Positions 29,774 through 39,960 of a stretch of DNA of 64,000 nucleotides are shown here, piece after piece. Where the stretch lies: assembly GCF_035594765.1 (NCBI RefSeq), contig NW_026943820.1:18608647-18672646 (forward strand), written 5' to 3'. Within the stretch, counting starts at the first letter, position 1, and every line of letters begins with the position of its first letter. The position numbers and the translations under genes are program-made. The notes under the pieces are model-generated. The model saw only the letters and a list, made by a program, of their open reading frames with translations, made no database searches and was not told where the DNA came from. The DNA is from Anolis carolinensis (lineage: Eukaryota).

Positions 29774-29872
29774 ATGGGAGACAAGCCTATTTGGGAACAG
29801 ATCGGTTCCAGCTTTGTACAGCATTACTACCAGTTATTTGATACAGACAGAACTCAATTAGGAGCAATATAC
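29774..29872 (+). CDS. NUTF2: Nuclear transport factor 2, coding exon 1 ([33 protein letters not shown])
   Basis: Exon begins at 29754 after ttggcag; near-identical to vertebrate NTF2; donor gtaagt. Confidence 0.97.
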
Positions 29873-30717: not shown

Positions 30718-30789
30718 ATAGATGCCTCATGCCTTACGTGGGAAGGACAACAATTTCAGGGCAAAGCAGCTATTGTTGAAAAACTCTCA
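30718..30789 (+). CDS. NUTF2: NTF2 coding exon 2 (IDASCLTWEGQQFQGKAAIVEKLS)
   Basis: tttcag/gtaagt; matches NTF2. Confidence 0.97.
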
Positions 30790-31179
30790 GTAAGTATTTG
30801 CAGTAGCAGTTAATGTGTGATAGATTTTTATTCAGTCTGAAATTTGATAGATTTGCTTCTCTGGGCGAGATAATCTCTAGCTTTACATCTGATGTCATAT
30901 TCATTGCACATTCCTCATACAGTACAGTTGTCACTTCCTACGTGGTGGTTTCAATAGTGTTTATCTGTATGATTTCATTAACTTCTATAGCATCTCATGT
31001 AAGCAATACCTAGCTTTTGTGTGTACCTTAATCCTGAGGTTTTAATAAAAGCACACCTTTGGGTCATTGAATACCATATCTCCTTGTCTTGAACTTAGTC
31101 AATCAGATACACATTTCTTTCACATACAGAACTGAAATTGTGTGAGAGTGAGTTAAAGAGTTTCTTGTTTCCATTACAG

Positions 31180-31278
31180 AGCCTTCCCTTTCAGAAAATA
31201 CAACACAGTATCACAGCGGAAGACCATCAACCCACACCTGACAGCTGTATACTCAGTATGGTAGTAGGGCAGCTTAAG
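31180..31278 (+). CDS. NUTF2: NTF2 coding exon 3 ([33 protein letters not shown])
   Basis: ttacag/gtatgt; matches NTF2. Confidence 0.97.
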
Positions 31279-34200
31279 GTATGTGCTACTTTCAACCTTG
31301 AACCCTATGAAATGGTGTTTTAGAGCTCCGTTAAGGCCCATTTTGGGTATAAACCATAGTTTGGGTGCCATAGATAGGATGTGGGCTTACATGTTTCCCT
31401 TTCATTATTTGATGATCTTGGCAGAAAAAGAATGAGTACCCATAGAGAAATGTGTGTAAAAGTTTGAAGGAAAGCTGCTGCTTTACATTTAAATCTTTGA
31501 TCAATCTGGTATCAAATATCTACCCCCACTACCCCAAGCGAGACAATCTGTTTTTGATTGAATTGTGGAAACCAAGTGGCTTTTCCATTTGGTTGAAACA
31601 AAGGTGATAAACATTATGACTGAGGTATAAAGTTCCTCATAACCTCAGTGGTAGCTGTTGAGCAAGTCCCATCTATTGGTTGCAAGTAACTGAAAGTGGG
31701 ACCAGTGCTTTTATATGCAGTTGTTGCCTCTCTGACAGCAGAGTTTAAACAGAAACCTGAACAAATATTGTAGGGATTTTGGTAAGAATGTGTCATGTAA
31801 TTGTGAGCCTATGACTCAGACTGTAGACAGCAGCCATTTGGGAGCTTCGTTCATTCGAAAAGCTGTGTGATGCCTATGGTCACATCCTCTCACTTTATTT
31901 CAATGGGTGCCCTGTGAAAAAAGAAAACCAACAAAGAATCTTGTGTTGACAGTTTCAAAAAAACAAAGCATTTATGATGTGAAGAAACGACAGCAGCAGC
32001 AGTTTTAGCACATCAGAAGCTTCTTGAGCTAACAAGAGTGGAGTGAATGAGCTTCAGCAATATAGGAGCAGAGTCAAGCTTTAAAAGTTATAAAAGACAT
32101 TATTCAAAGATCTGCATTTCTATATAGGAAAGTTAGGACCTAGTTATCTAGCTATATTGAGACATCTTGTCTCTCCATACTCACAGGAGAAGAACAAAAT
32201 GGGATTGCCATGCCATCTGAAAACTTTGAATGAAAAGAGGCATGTCCCTGAGAAGTATCAGTACAAGAAACAAGAGAGAGAGTAGAGAAGCAGGCAGAGA
32301 GCAATGGGGGAAAGGCTTTCCCTGTCGGCTAACTCATTTGCCTTTCTATTTCCTTAATAAGGGCTATAAACCTGTGCAGGATATAGTTGAGTTCCAACAC
32401 CTTGTAATACTGCAAATATTTTTTTGGGGGGGGGGGGGGGGGAATGGCAATTATAACCTTTTTGAAAAAGTTATTCAGTTTGTTTTCAATTGTCCTTTGC
32501 CCTGCTGATACTGCAAGGTCACAAATTCCCAGCCGTGAAACAGTGAGCAGGGGGAAACATAAGCACAAACACATTCCCTGACTGATAAAAGACTAGGGCA
32601 ATAAACTACTTGGCTAATAAAAACAAGTAAATAAAATTAAAGCAGGAGCGCTCTGCCGAAGCAGCCTGCCTCGGCTCACGCCAACCGGAAGTCTGCCACC
32701 TTTTTGAAAAAGAAAAATGATGTCATATCCGTTTGGCAAATGTGAATCTCCATGAACATCTGAAGATACCTTTTGAAAACCACTAGTCAAGGAAAGGCAT
32801 GACCTTGTTAGAAGTCAACCCTTTGAACAAGTGATGTTTATAATCATTCACATAATGGCACACAGATAACTCGGCTGTTAAACTGAAGAATCATGTCTTT
32901 GAACTACCAGGAAACAAAGACATGCCACTACAAAAATATATTTGGTTAGCAGAGTTTTCAAGATGTTTCTTTGAAGTTGAAATTGGAATTGTAGTTGCAG
33001 TTGCCCAAAAGATATACACTCCCTTGAAACTTATTAGTTTAAAATATGCATTCAGAGATTAAAAAAACAAAAGTCTTCCTTAGAAAAATAACGTATCTTG
33101 TTTACTCGCAAACATTTTGTATTAATTCACCATACATGCACATTTCTTATTAAAGTTCAGTTATAGATAGGATGTAGTTTCTCTGTGTTGAGAAACCATA
33201 GTCCAAAGTATAATTGTACTCACTGCTTCTCAAATTAAGCATATAGTAAACTGTTGCTGCATAAATTCAAATGACAGCTGCTTCCATTGAAGTCCAAACA
33301 CATACTGATAACAAAATGGAGTTTTGAGTCTAAACATGCTCAATACAATCACATCTCTATCCCCTCCCACACCAAAGAGGTCAGTCAAACTGGAAAATCA
33401 ACATATACATATAATACAGATTAGCAAACATACATTAACAAATAAATAGTGAAGGCTTAAAAAGTTGCTATTTCCAACAAAAATCACTTTGTTATGACCG
33501 AGAAATTTGTGCTGATAAATTAGTCTTACTGTCATTACAATTCTGTAATTTTAGTGCTACAGATATAACACAACTGCCTCTCTGGAAATTATTAAGACTG
33601 TAGTACAGCTCTGGGTGTAGAAGACTATCTTGTTCTCTGGAAGCAACTAGAAGCAGTGTTAAAAATCAGAGAAAACAGGTTCTCCCTCCATGCCTCTTCT
33701 CCCATTTTCCATCCGCAACATCTGTCCCCTTGAAAAAAATTGTTTAAGAAAGGGGGTATTTGATTTTTATTCTTGTTACCCAGTTTGAGTGACATAATTT
33801 GGACAGAAAAGTAAGTTGTATATTAAATAAATCATGTACTAACTGTGAAGCATTTATGGAATTTCAGGTCAGTATGGAGAGCAATGTATTTAGCTTATAG
33901 GTGACATATTTAACTGTGTAGAGTCGAGAGGTATATTGCAGTTTACCTAGGAAGACTGAGGAAGAATTAGGAATGAAAAGCATTGTATGAACATCCTTGG
34001 GACACAGAGTCCTTGTAGGTCTGTAAGTGGGCACTTTTAGCTAGCAAGACACATCTGTTGTATAGGTCCATTAATTTTGCGAAAACTGCCTTTAAATGAC
34101 CTCACAGCTCCTTCTGCTCACTGCTAACTTCATCCTTCTGATAATGATGGTTCTGGCTGTCCTTTGATAAACTGCAACCTTCTCCTCATTTGGCCTGTTA

Positions 34201-35449
34201 TTCCAAGGAGAGGAATGGCTTTTCAGCCCGCAATTCTCATGGCAACTTCTGGCCTCAGAGGGAAAACCAGCAGCATGTCCTTTGGTTGGGAAAAATACAT
34301 GACATGACCTGGTATATTTTGATAACTAGTGTGACCACATTTGTGAGAATTCTTATCCATCAGTTAAAGGATGTTTATTTGTATTCATCTGTAATGTGCA
34401 TCCATTATAATCTGTGTGTAATCAATAAAATCTGTTATTTTATCACACAGTCTTGTTTCGTTTTGGTAATTCTGTAATTTCTTATTGACTAGTGTTCAGT
34501 TTGTATGAACAGAAGGATATGCCAGCAGAGGATATGCCAATCTTGCATACAGAAACTAGATGAAACTTATTATCTCAAAGTTATATTTCTTCCTGAGTTT
34601 GTCCAAATATAATGTAGTAGAAAAGAGCTTGTGCTTCTGCAGTTTGTAAGAAATTTGTTTAATACATTTTCTCAGGCAGATCTAGAGAGGATGAGACAGC
34701 AGAGAGCATTGGTTTTTCCTTTACTTTCTGAATGTTCAGTTGAACACTGCCTCTAACGTTATTCATTATGCATTGTGTATTTATTGCATCACTAAACCTG
34801 GTTCAGTAGATCAGAAACACAAAGAAGGCATGTAGACAGCTGTTCAAAATGAGAAACCAGATTCATATCAACATACCAGAATATTAGTGTTACTTGGTGT
34901 ATCTTTACAGATAAACAATTTTTAGTAGGCTTAAAACTCACTTTTCAGTTTATTTTTTTAAGTTAGGACCCAGTTCCACTCAATGGCATTTTATTTTTTA
35001 AAAGTTCTCTTATGTAAAGAGCTATGAAGAACTTTGGAGAATATATGCCAAATGGAGTAGATACTGCACTGTGCAAGAATTAACAAAAGTAATGCAGATT
35101 TATGTTTTCATAGTTTCAGAGAACAGAAGCTGCTAGTTTTTGCAAAATTGGTGGTCATTATTTAAAACACGAACAACCCATTATATAGGGAAACCTCTTG
35201 CAAAACAGTTAAGATGAAAAGATATAGCTTGTAGCTGTGATGTAAATATTAGACTAGTAAGTAACTGAATAGATTCCCTTTCCACTTGTTACATTGCTTC
35301 TTGTCTACTTGTCCATCAACAGTTCAAGTATCAGTGTGGCACATTCTGGGTACACACAGTAAATGCACTCTTAATAAACCCCAAGTGAAACAGGCATCCT
35401 GTGTTTTCAGAACCTGTCCATTTAATGGTTTCTCTCCTCTTCTGCTCAG

Positions 35450-35560
35450 GCAGATGATGACCAAGTTCTAGGTTTCCATCAGACCTTTTTGTTGAAAAGC
35501 TTGCAAGGTGCTTGGGTTTGTACCAATGAAGTCTTCAGGCTAGCGCTCCACAATCTTTAG
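35450..35560 (+). CDS. NUTF2: NTF2 alternative (duplicated) last exon A: [36 protein letters not shown]
   Basis: Strong polypyrimidine acceptor tttctctcctcttctgctcag, phase 0, open and indel-free against exon B; AATAAA at 35781 and 36016. Confidence 0.8.
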
Positions 35561-37390
35561 CTTCTTGCCTCCTCCTCCCTCTGAACTCTGCAGTCCTCAC
35601 TGAGTAAGAAGCCTTCTGCTTGCTCCTGTCTCCCAGTTGACCTTGAAGCCTGAATAGCATGACTGCTGCTTGTGTGTTATCAATGCAGGACTGCAGAATG
35701 AAAACTTTGCTTGACCCAGAATTGTGACTCCTGAATTAAGAAAGGTGTGGGTTCTCTTAGGAAGCAAATGCTGCAAAATTAATAAAGCATAACTGTTTTG
35801 TTTTCTGCCAGTCAGTTGCCTGCTTAACATATGCCAGACTTTAGAAACGTGGGACATACATGTGGCATACAGTGAATGCTTACCTCTATATGTCTGGAAA
35901 TTTCTGTCTTCTCTAAAGCCTGTAGGCATATTTGCAGTTTATCTCGCAGAGCGAGGCAACAATCCACAAACAAAGGCAGAATACTTTCTAAAGTACCAGA
36001 TGGTCCATGAGTAATAATAAAAAGTCAAGTCTCTGCTCCAAAATACCTAAATTACAACAGTACTTTAGAGATGGGAAAGCAAACAAAGGAGAAGCATCAG
36101 CATCAGAGCTGCAAATATACAAACTTTACTTGAAGTAAAGATGAAAATTAAAGGTCTAACCCAAAGGCTTCATAAAAAGTTGGGTTTTAAATAAAGAGTT
36201 GGCCTAGTGTTTTCAAACTGTAACTCTAAAAATATTATTGAATCACACAGCATGAATATGTGGTTATGCTACATTTATCTGATTTGAATTTTAATATGTA
36301 AGGGAAGGAACAAATGGTATCATTGTGTGAAATGCTTGCTTGTGAAAGGACTTGCTTCTTGGGAAGTAGTTTTATTTTTCTCCACCGCTCTATCAAGATG
36401 CACTTGTAAAGGATTTTCACTAATTTCAGTCTTAGCGGAAGTAGTTTACCTGAACTCTGGGTTGGGGGAAGAAAGGGGCCATGGATGGGCATTCAACACC
36501 TAAAAATTGCAATGGAATTCAGATCTAACAATAGTTTTTATAACAATATTTTTATAAGATAGACTTTATGGATGCAGTACAATATTTCCATTTCAGTGCA
36601 AGAGACAACCCACAATTAACTTGGAGAAAGCATGATATTCATGTGCAGATGTAACTGATAGTTTCCTCTTGTCTTTTCCAGAGTTTATGTGGTAGCCTAA
36701 CAACAGATGTATTGAATTATTATCCATCTTTTGTAATTATGCAAAAAATACTATGGGACCAAAAAGTTATTTCAGGCATCCTTCTGTCTTATTTTTGGAA
36801 GCAGAAGCAATTTAGCCGTTTGCTTTTGTGATGACCATGGTAGAAGTCCCATTTTGTGACATGTGGTAGTGGAAAAATATGTAGCAGACTCCTCCTGTAT
36901 TTTTTTATAATATATATCCTCTTGTACATCATAATCTTCAAGCTTGAACAGAAAATTATTATTTGTTTTAAATGACACTCTCTTGTGGAACTCAGAGCAA
37001 AGTGTTTCAGAATCTTAAGGCACAAAGGGAACCCTAGTTGATAAATTCTGTTTAAAATTTACATTGCAAAAAGAACAACACTTTCAAATTTCAATAAGCA
37101 CAGATTATAGCTCAGTAGTAATTGCTACTGTGAGAAGGGATCACCTCTAAGTTTGCTAGTAGCTTGAATATTGTCCATGACATAATAATGATGCACTATT
37201 CAAACTGAGAATGCACGCCCAAATCCTAGGATATATTAAACCTTTTTGGTGGGTTGGCGGAAGGGTGTGTGATTGTTTTATATTGTTTTGCTGAATGGAG
37301 TCGTATGCATGACAAATCTGTCACTAGTGCCAGAATTCTCCTGCTAGAATATATCTGTTTCTAAAGTGTATTTTTCTTCTGTCTTCACAG

Positions 37391-37504
37391 GCTGATGAAG
37401 ATCCTATTATGGGATTCCACCAGATCTTTCTATTAAAGAACATCAATGATGCTTGGGTTTGCACCAATGACATGTTCAGGCTAGCATTGCACAACTTTGG
37501 TTGA
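37391..37504 (+). CDS. NUTF2: NTF2 canonical last exon B: [37 protein letters not shown]
   Basis: Acceptor ttctgtcttcacag; gives the canonical 127-aa NTF2; AATAAA at 37899 and 40957. Confidence 0.97.
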
Positions 37505-39960
37505 GACAGCATCCCTGAGGCATCTGTCCTTTTCTTTTCTCCTCTCCTCTTTGCAGATATTACTCACACTCATGGAACATTCCAAATATCATACACAAAT
37601 TTGCAACACTATGGCAAGCCAGCAAGACCTGTGACGTGCCCCTCCGAAGAGTTTTTGTTGTATCACTAGAAGAGCTCCTTGTGCATGATGTTTGGAAGTT
37701 AGACTTAGCTGCATTTGACAAGGGAAATCTTTGTGTCACCGGCATGTCTTGGGAAGAATCCATAACACAAAAGGTTGTGTTTCTGTACTGACAAGTTTTC
37801 TAATACTCCAAAGAAACAAAAGGAAAGAAAAGAACAGCAGCTCGAATCCAGCTCAGATATTTTTTTTGTCGTTCAGATGTTTCAGTGCTACATAATACAA
37901 TAAAACCATGCAATTTTCCTAACAGTTTAAATTGTTGGATGTTCAGTCTGTAACTAGAGAGTCCTTCATCTCCAACTATATCCAAATACCTGGTTTGGGA
38001 GCAGGTGGCTGGACATACATTTGAAGTTGTGAAAAATGTTCATAGCTGTTTTGTAGGACTTTTTTGGTAGTTGTGAAAGTTTTGGATATATCAATTGATG
38101 GATTGTTCAAGTACTGAACATTGCGTCCTCATGAAAATCACAACATGGATTTATATTGATTATGTGTATGCAGATCAGATCATTACACTGAAACTTTAGT
38201 ATTTTCTTTTGTTTTTAGTACCAAATGGATTGAAAAGTGATGCATAAAAAGTGACAATGCAGGATGTACTGTGGATAGGTTTCCTTTTTATGGACTGTTT
38301 TCCAGACTACCATATTTACTGTTTTGTTCAAGAGCTGGGGACCTTTTTTCAAAGTAACGTGTAACTTTGTCCCCGAAGACATTGGCAACCACATTTTAAT
38401 GCTCACCTGTGTCTTGCTCTGGGTAATATCCTGAGCTGTCCTTCAGATTTTTTGTTGTATCAGGGGCATGCATCAATAGTAGTGTCTTAATTAGTTAAAA
38501 AGCCTCAATACATATAAACAGCTCAAACAACTCTAGAAAAATATTCTTTCCCTCTGTGGAAAGCTTCAGAGAGGTAAATAATCCCCCCCTCCCCAAAATG
38601 GCCAGATCCTGGAAGGATATTTATTCAAGCATTGTTAAAGGCTTTCACAGCCAGAATCACTAGAATGTTATGGTTTCTGCCTATGTGTGTTTGTTTGAGT
38701 GTTTATTAGCGGGAGCTGAGCAGTCTTGTATTCACAGGCCTTTGACATTATTGTATTTTCTACAGAGCAGTTCCAACATATGCTGGGGACCTGAGCTGGC
38801 ACACAGTCTTCTATTCAAGATGCTGATAAATACCAGAAGAAATGTGCCGTTTTTGGCTCTGCAAAAGAAATCTGTTTGATGTGCTCATTGATGATCTTGC
38901 ATAAGGGCAGCTCTTGTCTGTACCTATATGGCTACAAACAATTCAAAGCAATGTTTTAAAGTGTGTTCAAATACAGAAGTTTATTTCTATACTACCCGAA
39001 TGATCCAAGCTTTTTAAAAAGTCACTTTTGGATTTACTCTTCAGTGTGTCATGTAGATTCTTTGCACTGATGCTTCTGCATCCTTGTATTTTCATGGTGT
39101 TGTTTCCTTACTCAGGGAAAATCCAAATAATGGCTACTCTTCCCAGCAAGGACGCATTCTGAAGAACAACGGCTGGATCTACACTGCCATATAATGCAGT
39201 TTGAATCTGTACAATATGGTCAGTGTCGACCTATATAATGCAGTTAAACTGTATTGTATGAGTCCCCACTGACTATATAATTCAGATTCAAACTGCATTA
39301 TATGGCAGTGTACATTCAACGTATAGCTCATACCACTAGCCCTGCTTGCCAGTGGTGTTGCTGGCCAGTTCTGGAAACTTGTTTGGGCAATGAGGCTTAG
39401 GCTGGCATCTATGTCTTAATATGTGTGTAGACTTCATTTGTGACCATCCCAATATTTGTGGAATATATTTCCAAGCTTGTTAAGGATTACAGCATTTTGG
39501 TCTTCAAAGCAGATGACAGAAAGAAGAAGATTTTCTCCTTGCAAACTCACTAGTAGGACACAGGCGTCTTCTGTGTGAATCTCAAATGACTTCACCTTGT
39601 AAGAAGGTTGGAGGAAAGAAGGTATTGCATTCTTCTGTGTTTTGAACTAATTGTTGTATAGGCCTTAATAAGAGCAGTGTCCAATAGCCATATAGACACA
39701 AAATGCCTTACAAAAATTAGTTAAATGTGACTTTCACGGGGAACACATTTTGTTTAAAAGGGGGCCTTACTCATTCTTTTTGATGGAACAGCTCAGGTGA
39801 GCTCAGGTGAGTTGTCCTGTTCACATGATCTTCAGCCTCCAAATACCAGCATGTGCTACTGTCTTCAAAATAATGTTCCTACTAAAGGAAATACTAAGGA
39901 CTGTAGATGAATAGGTTATTCAAGAAACTAAGAGAGGCCATCCAGCCTGCTCTACTTAAT

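Follow-up and report, generated by a model that had tools for sequence, protein, structure and literature searches.

A conserved second copy of the last NUTF2 coding exon in Anolis carolinensis and the alternative NTF2 C-terminus that it probably encodes

The stretch analysed here, called the window below, comprises 64,000 nucleotides of Anolis carolinensis DNA (assembly GCF_035594765.1, contig NW_026943820.1, positions 18,608,647 to 18,672,646 of the forward strand) and contains NUTF2, the gene for nuclear transport factor 2 (NTF2). NTF2 carries RanGDP back into the nucleus, an essential task, and, to our knowledge, it has so far been treated as a single-isoform protein. In the window, the last coding exon of NUTF2 is present in two homologous copies: the canonical, B-type copy at 37391-37504, named here exon 5b, and an upstream A-type copy at 35450-35560, named exon 5a. 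Taken as a whole, the results are best explained by exon 5a being a functional, anciently duplicated homologue of the last NUTF2 coding exon, a reading that we hold with high confidence. The positions of all features are listed in Table 1.

The A-type copy was translated into 36 amino acids followed by TAG, with no gap and no internal stop, and the B-type copy into 37 amino acids followed by TGA. Both copies are preceded by a polypyrimidine tract and an AG, both are in phase 0 with the upstream exon at 31180-31278, and their lengths are nearly equal (111 vs 114 nt). When compared with all PDB sequences, the A peptide matched NTF2 residues 91-125 (1OUN-type chains, E = 1.1e-13), and the B peptide matched residues 91-127 (E = 9e-22), being the same as rat NTF2 except at residue 102. 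The nucleotide sequences of the two exons align without gaps and are identical at 78 of 108 positions (72%), with 8, 4 and 18 differences at the first, second and third codon positions, respectively; at the protein level, 24 of 36 residues are identical. The alignment covers only the coding sequence and the few intron bases just before it, which form the acceptor, while the flanks cannot be aligned, and no third copy of the last exon was found within the 64-kb window. The translation, the alignment and the PDB matches confirm the original prediction, made from the letters of the window alone, that 35450-35560 is a stop-free and indel-free paralogue of 37391-37504 with the same phase and a strong acceptor. 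The two AATAAA hexamers that it reported, at 35781 and 36016, are present as well, 221 and 456 nt past the A stop.

The A-type C-terminus differs from the B-type one by 12 substitutions and lacks residue G127. Six of the substitutions (P95Q, M97L, I102T, D117E, M118V and F126L) and the missing G127 had been listed correctly in the original prediction, which was short of the other six (E93D, I96V, N107S, I108L, N109Q and D110G).

Eleven bases, TTCAGGCTAGC, covering codons F119-A122, are identical in both copies (35528-35538 and 37469-37479). The same bases are found at the same place in nearly all species from shark to bird, and the match extends to the synonymous positions of R120 (AGG) and L121 (CTA), both of which have six-fold codons. 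Such identity points to a nucleotide-level constraint common to both exons, for example a splicing enhancer or paired RNA; the sequence GCTAGC is palindromic.

Table 1. Coordinates of the NUTF2 coding exons and of the elements around the two copies of the last exon in the window.
Feature	Position	Strand	Remarks
NUTF2 first coding exon, M1-Y33	29774..29872	+	donor GTAAGT
NUTF2 coding exon, I34-S57	30718..30789	+	donor GTAAGT
NUTF2 coding exon, S58-K90 (exon 4; upstream exon common to both C-terminal exons)	31180..31278	+	phase 0, whole codon at the end, donor AAG/GTATGT
3' splice site of the A-type exon	35421..35449	+	branch-point-like TTAAT, polypyrimidine tract, AG
A-type exon (5a), coding part, residues 91-126	35450..35560	+	36 codons and TAG at 35558-35560
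Pyrimidine-rich trailer after the A stop, 43 nt	35561..35603	+	partly kept in gull and turtle
GTAAGA, 5'-splice-site-like motif	35604..35609	+	GTAAG 42-51 nt past the A stop in six species
Blocks conserved between window, gull and turtle	35610..35800	+	one block encloses the window AATAAA at 35781-35786; gull and turtle without a hexamer there
Second AATAAA after A	36016..36021	+	surrounding sequence not conserved in gull or turtle
Canonical B-type last coding exon (5b), residues 91-127	37391..37504	+	37 codons and TGA
AATAAA 395 nt past the B stop	37899..37904	+	coordinate computed from the offset

The distribution of the two exon types was analysed in 13 genomic loci, i.e., those of six gulls, the snapping turtle, two frogs, a cyprinid, a catshark, the elephant shark (a chimaera) and the leopard cat, the last being the sole mammalian locus. 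The order of exon 4, an intact A-type exon and a B-type exon was found in every one of these loci except that of the cat, with the B exon lying 2-27 kb beyond the A exon. The next gene is EDC4 at the elephant shark, cyprinid and cat loci. The turtle genome has the A exon, though only a B-type product is on record for the turtle. In the last intron of the cat gene (1.8 kb), no A exon was found either by tblastn or with a nucleotide profile of A, and no mammalian protein with an A-type end was present among the protein match lists. Mammals appear to have lost exon 5a, which agrees with the statement in the original prediction that no such exon was known to it from mammals. The presence of the exon pair in cartilaginous fishes and in bony vertebrates indicates that the duplication predates the split between them. 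The lamprey and hagfish proteins have a single C-terminal type, which is weak negative evidence, and the A/B duplication may or may not have preceded the cyclostomes.

An exhaustive search with the A peptide against 1.84 billion representative proteins gave matches that were 80-94% identical, compared with about 69% for canonical NTF2. The A-type matches came from birds, lizards, a caecilian, frogs, the axolotl, reedfish, cyprinids, a chimaera, sharks and a skate. The window peptides of exon 2 and exon A are closest to a Lacerta/Podarcis protein, with which they have in common a 13-residue stretch in exon 2 and KSLQG in exon 5a. Residue 71 of the window protein is Glu (31219-31221, SITAEDHQ), while nearly all other vertebrate NTF2 sequences compared have Gln, a few Ser, Thr or His, and none Glu. 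A separate type named "NTF2-like", with V91 and a C-terminus ending in LALYNFA, occurs in turtles, lizards, snakes and marsupials; it is unlike the A and B exon types and, judged from the names, is probably a separate paralogous gene.

The phylogenetic analysis at the codon level was performed on nine A exons and eight B exons. The latter all grouped in one clade (ultrafast bootstrap, UFBoot, 99), and a long branch of 0.86 lies between them and the A exons. It follows from this separation that a single duplication preceded the gnathostome radiation and that the copies were not homogenised afterwards. The pairwise ratio of non-synonymous to synonymous substitution rates (dN/dS) among A exons ranged from 0.03 to 0.23, with synonymous sites approaching saturation, and the window and gull A exons differ by 12 synonymous vs 3 non-synonymous changes. 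The maximum-likelihood omega was 0.15 for A and 0.066 for B, and omega = 1 was rejected for A (2dlnL = 54.9, p = 1.3e-13). These values indicate that both copies are under purifying selection at the protein level. Moreover, the intron upstream of A ends in the same 11 bases (cttctgctcag), or nearly the same, in the chimaera, catshark, frogs, turtle and gulls.

With these results, a dead and slowly decaying copy, or one kept similar to 5b by gene conversion, has a negligible probability. Such an origin would fit the window codons 111-122, which are almost identical in A and B even at synonymous sites. However, the A exon is intact in each of the 13 non-mammalian loci examined, over roughly 450 million years (My), and its flanks have diverged past alignment while the exon itself has not. 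The reciprocal monophyly of the two types shows that no conversion has homogenised them, and a dead copy is excluded because of the omega values, the tree and the conserved acceptor. Both readings were rejected by the dN/dS values, the omega test and the tree, unless the loci are misassembled. The original prediction had named the outcomes that would mark a dead exon copy, i.e., no conservation or a dN/dS near 1 in relatives; what was found is clearly different, namely an omega of 0.15 and an intact exon from sharks to birds, and its suggestion of selection on the second copy is borne out. Its central claim, two paralogous exons giving alternative C-termini of NTF2, is supported by the conserved exon pair and by this selection.

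The A-type product is already annotated in many species. In RefSeq, it is given as "nuclear transport factor 2 isoform X2" (or X3, X5, X6), alongside a B-type isoform encoded by the same gene, in Lacerta agilis, Hirundo rustica, nine frogs, Ambystoma, Rhinatrema, Carassius gibelio, Amblyraja, Mustelus, two Scyliorhinus species, Pristiophorus and Callorhinchus, with X1/X2 pairs in, e.g., Pristiophorus, Ambystoma and Lithobates. Examples of A-type accessions are XP_033014822.1 (Lacerta agilis), XP_077314144.1 (Lithobates pipiens) and XP_042196111.1 (Callorhinchus milii). UniProt contains A-type proteins of 74 passerines and 37 other birds, and in the B10K bird annotations the A-type is the only NUTF2 model. 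The existence of the exon is therefore known from public annotation and is not a discovery, and the reservation made in the original prediction, that the exon might be annotated in sauropsids, was well placed for sauropsids and for many other vertebrates. The protein searches gave no match for the window's own A-type product. No paper describing the A isoform was found in the literature searched, which left out most subscription journals; the age of the exon, the constraint on it, its apparent loss in mammals and its architecture, possibly safe from nonsense-mediated decay (NMD), do not seem to be described there.

Exact full-length A-type proteins of carp and skate are also recorded from Logan contigs. 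These records hint at a spliced mRNA for the A-type, since an uninterrupted full-length frame needs an intron-less contig. The RefSeq isoforms X2 and X3 of Bombina bombina and the Antrostomus model XP_010171357.1 show A spliced into B via donors inside or at the end of A; among these models, one is in frame, giving a tandem A-B chimera, and another leaves the frame and ends in a 14-residue tail. The models of Phaethornis and of Scyliorhinus torazame (X8) include a different, non-homologous exon of the last intron before B, with B read out of frame. According to the annotated models, the last NUTF2 intron hosts more than one alternative exon.

Among the sequencing runs listed for this genome, none was recorded as RNA. 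The four runs analysed over 31175-37170 are evidently DNA, as introns are covered as evenly as exons and no joint occurs at 31278, 35450 or 35603. In all four runs, an interspersed repeat was observed at 32575-33575, in the intron that separates exon 4 from exon A, where the contig depth is in the hundreds to tens of thousands and loose ends are numerous.

Several points weigh against the functional reading of exon 5a. The use of 35450 and 35604 in this genome is putative, and the annotated isoforms of other species are computed models. The A-like C-termini of the trout (Oncorhynchus mykiss) and gar (Lepisosteus) are far more diverged than the others; for example, NEVF is replaced by NKFF or SEVF and GFHQ is broken. 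This divergence suggests that in some ray-finned fishes the exon is decaying or under relaxed constraint. Since these two copies look degenerate, exon A is not indispensable everywhere. We nevertheless consider that exon A is almost certainly in use.

The original prediction described 5a as a terminal exon with its own AATAAA signals. The hexamers are there, but the terminal status is doubtful, as a donor-like GTAAG is conserved about 43 nt past the stop and the hexamers are not positionally conserved. The GTAAG lies 43 nt past the A stop in the window (35604-35608), 47 nt in the gull, 42 nt in the turtle, 51 nt in the cyprinid, 44 nt in the chimaera and 43 nt in the catshark, i.e., in six of the eight species compared. 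Its frequency in these loci is about 0.0008 per base, which gives a chance of about 0.01 per lineage for the 13-nt span, and the sauropsids, the teleost and the chondrichthyans count as three independent lineages. In the chimaera-catshark and frog-frog alignments, conservation ends just past the donor-like motif. The first AATAAA or ATTAAA past the B stop is found at 375-395 nt in the window, gulls, turtle and chimaera (298 nt in the catshark, 586 nt in the cyprinid and 69 nt in Lithobates), whereas the first hexamer past the A stop varies between 177 and 1389 nt across species and is missing at the homologous place in the gull and turtle. Because the GTAAG spacing is conserved, conservation ends after the motif, the hexamer position is fixed for B and not for A, and the Bombina models join A to B, we slightly favour the reading of 5a as an internal, stop-carrying exon (35450-35603) that would be spliced on to 5b and escape NMD.

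Three observations count against this internal exon. In both frogs, a motif of a different sequence and at a different distance, GAG/GTGTGT (the slash marking the putative junction), is found 23 nt past the A stop. The window donor is weak on its exon side: TGA/GTAAGA scores about 3.8 bits vs 5.5-9.6 for the constitutive NUTF2 donors, according to a rough scoring matrix. Finally, the conservation between the window, gull and turtle reaches about 230 nt past the A stop, which also fits a short conserved 3' untranslated region (3' UTR). In an alternative reading, 5a is a true last exon, never spliced onward and polyadenylated after 35781 or 36016, with the GTAAG as a U1-binding or other regulatory element. 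We regard it as rather unlikely, although it would account for the two canonical hexamers past the stop, for the conserved block around the first of them, with three-way conservation raised to about 35800, and for the low divergence of a related species present in the read data. This species differs from the window at 3 of 705 positions in 35677-36381, compared with 7 of 393 around exon A and about 1.6% in the other intron pieces, counts that are too small to use alone. The homologous place without a hexamer in the gull and turtle speaks against a true last exon, as does the turtle sequence, in which no hexamer was found within 1.3 kb after the A stop. The GTAAG at a fixed 42-51 nt would be hard to explain, the position of the hexamer is conserved in four lineages for B and not for A, and the Bombina models join A to B.

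The conserved block that surrounds the first window hexamer reads GCA(A/G)AATTAAT..(G/C)ATAACT (35765-35800). It is located about 210-235 nt past the A stop and is kept in the window, gull and turtle, with the AATAAA inside it in the window only.

The mechanism proposed for the internal exon begins with the donor at 31278, which would be joined to the acceptor at either 35450 or 37391. The use of 35450 would give an NTF2 of 126 residues, of which the first 90 would be unchanged and residues 91-126 would be A-type, with translation ending at the TAG at 35558-35560. Exon 5a would end at 35603, and the GTAAG donor at 35604 would be spliced to 5b, which would then become the 3' UTR of the 5a mRNA and supply the positionally conserved poly(A) signal. 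A stop within roughly 50-55 nt of the last exon junction spares an mRNA from NMD, and the A stop, placed 43 nt before the 35603 junction, would lie inside this limit, so that the mRNA would escape decay. Polyadenylation after the AATAAA at 35781 would be possible, alone or as a second route. The expected product is a folded, dimer-competent NTF2 with changes in residues 102 and 118 of the dimer interface, in residue 97 of the Ran Phe72 pocket and in the C-terminal peptide, and its likeliest functional difference would concern homo- or heterodimer stability or the handling of RanGDP. The original prediction had likewise suggested that altered dimerisation or heterodimers might result, and that the choice between the exons might tune nuclear import by tissue.

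A stop-carrying exon may also be a poison exon, which would only add a premature stop and lower NUTF2 output via NMD, the peptide being irrelevant. The in-frame stop upstream of 5b and the possible downstream donor would be compatible with it. We consider this very improbable, as the constraint acts on the protein (omega of 0.15 with synonymous sites near saturation), E117 and V118 occur in 44-45 of the 47 A-type sequences, and the stop lies 43 nt from the putative junction in the window and 23-51 nt in other species, too near for decay by the 50-55 nt rule. As the main function of 5a, the poison exon was rejected on both the protein-level constraint and the stop-to-junction distance.

The residues that distinguish the two types were determined over 47 A-type and 83 B-type C-termini, which are not independent samples. 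The states diagnostic of the A-type are Q95, L or I97 (I in sharks), T102, G110, E117, V118, an aliphatic residue at 126 and the lack of a residue 127. In the loop 107-110, the A-type varies while the B-type is fixed, and A91, D92, D94, W112, F119, R120 and L121 are kept in A. In the structure of the NTF2-RanGDP complex, A91, M97, F119 and L121 help to line the pocket that receives Ran Phe72, while E42, D92 and D94 lie around the pocket and the C-terminal hydrophobic peptide provides a further contact (PMC3549806). In the window A-type sequence, the pocket residue M97 is changed to L, and the other listed pocket residues, A91, F119 and L121, are kept. The original prediction had assigned a role in Ran contact to the C-terminal region, and the same publication gives both residue 97 and the C-terminal peptide as Ran-contact elements (PMC3549806).

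Four full-length A-type proteins of other species carry precomputed matches to the NTF2 domain (Pfam PF02136). A complex of a bird A-type and a bird B-type protein with the same first 90 residues was modelled, and the predicted A/B heterodimer scored 0.84 vs 0.01 for the best control, with a predicted local distance difference test (pLDDT) value of at least 89 for the partner and agreement between runs in at least 89% of contacts. Among solved complexes, 51 of 78 reached this mark, as did 2 of 108 mismatched pairs; the score may, however, reflect memory of solved NTF2 dimers and is silent on affinity. The predicted interface includes, in both chains, residues 98, 100, 102, 104, 106, 115-116, 118, 120 and 122. 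The model thus places the diagnostic substitutions at 102 and 118 in the dimer interface, where the original prediction had expected these two residues. The PDB entries 1JB4 and 1JB5 are presumably the M102E and M118E dimer-interface mutants.

Beyond the existence of the exon, we suggest, as a tentative reading with somewhat less than an even chance, that NTF2-A would act as a second RanGDP importer that differs in function from the canonical one, its dimer interface (T102, V118), Ran pocket (L97) and C-terminal peptide having been retuned. This form would have been kept for >450 My beside the canonical form by an exon whose stop-to-junction distance is under the NMD limit, and it would have been lost in mammals and hence never met by a field working on rat, human and yeast NTF2. 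Independently of this reading, the exon shows that most non-mammalian jawed vertebrates encode a second NTF2 C-terminus under strong selection, and its changes coincide with the predicted dimer interface, the pocket for Ran and the peptide at the C-terminus. Two isoforms that differ over 36 residues offer a natural experiment on how NTF2 dimer stability and Ran binding relate to nuclear import capacity, which could be tested in chicken, Xenopus or zebrafish.

The A-type product can be compared with the canonical NTF2 of rat and human (PDB 1OUN, 1A2K), the homodimeric import factor for RanGDP. The first 90 residues are common to both, and a dimer of the A-type with the canonical form is predicted; the differences are the 12 substitutions of the window A-type within residues 91-126 and its lack of G127. 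The RefSeq isoform X2 models represent the same exon and the same 126-residue architecture as the window 5a and are computed annotations of other genomes. Similarity is also seen to stop-carrying penultimate exons, in which the stop is less than 50-55 nt from the last junction: the 5a stop likewise lies 43 nt before a donor-like motif, with a real last exon and a poly(A) signal downstream. Unlike in those exons, the 5a donor is a putative one, proposed from its conservation.

The closest known class is that of tandem-duplicated, alternatively spliced homologous exons, which have been surveyed previously (PMC4465641, PMC9741552). Like the members of this class, NUTF2 5a and 5b are adjacent, of the same phase and of near-equal length, date from early vertebrates and are both under purifying selection. 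The isoforms produced by such exons differ in one homologous stretch of a single domain and are otherwise the same, which is also the case in NUTF2. NUTF2 was not mentioned in the papers on homologous exons that we found. The pair is absent from human-centred catalogues because the event is missing from mammals. It also differs from the usual mutually exclusive exons in being C-terminal and in having a stop in each copy, so that exclusivity at the protein level would come from the stop of 5a and not from a bar on the joint inclusion of both exons.

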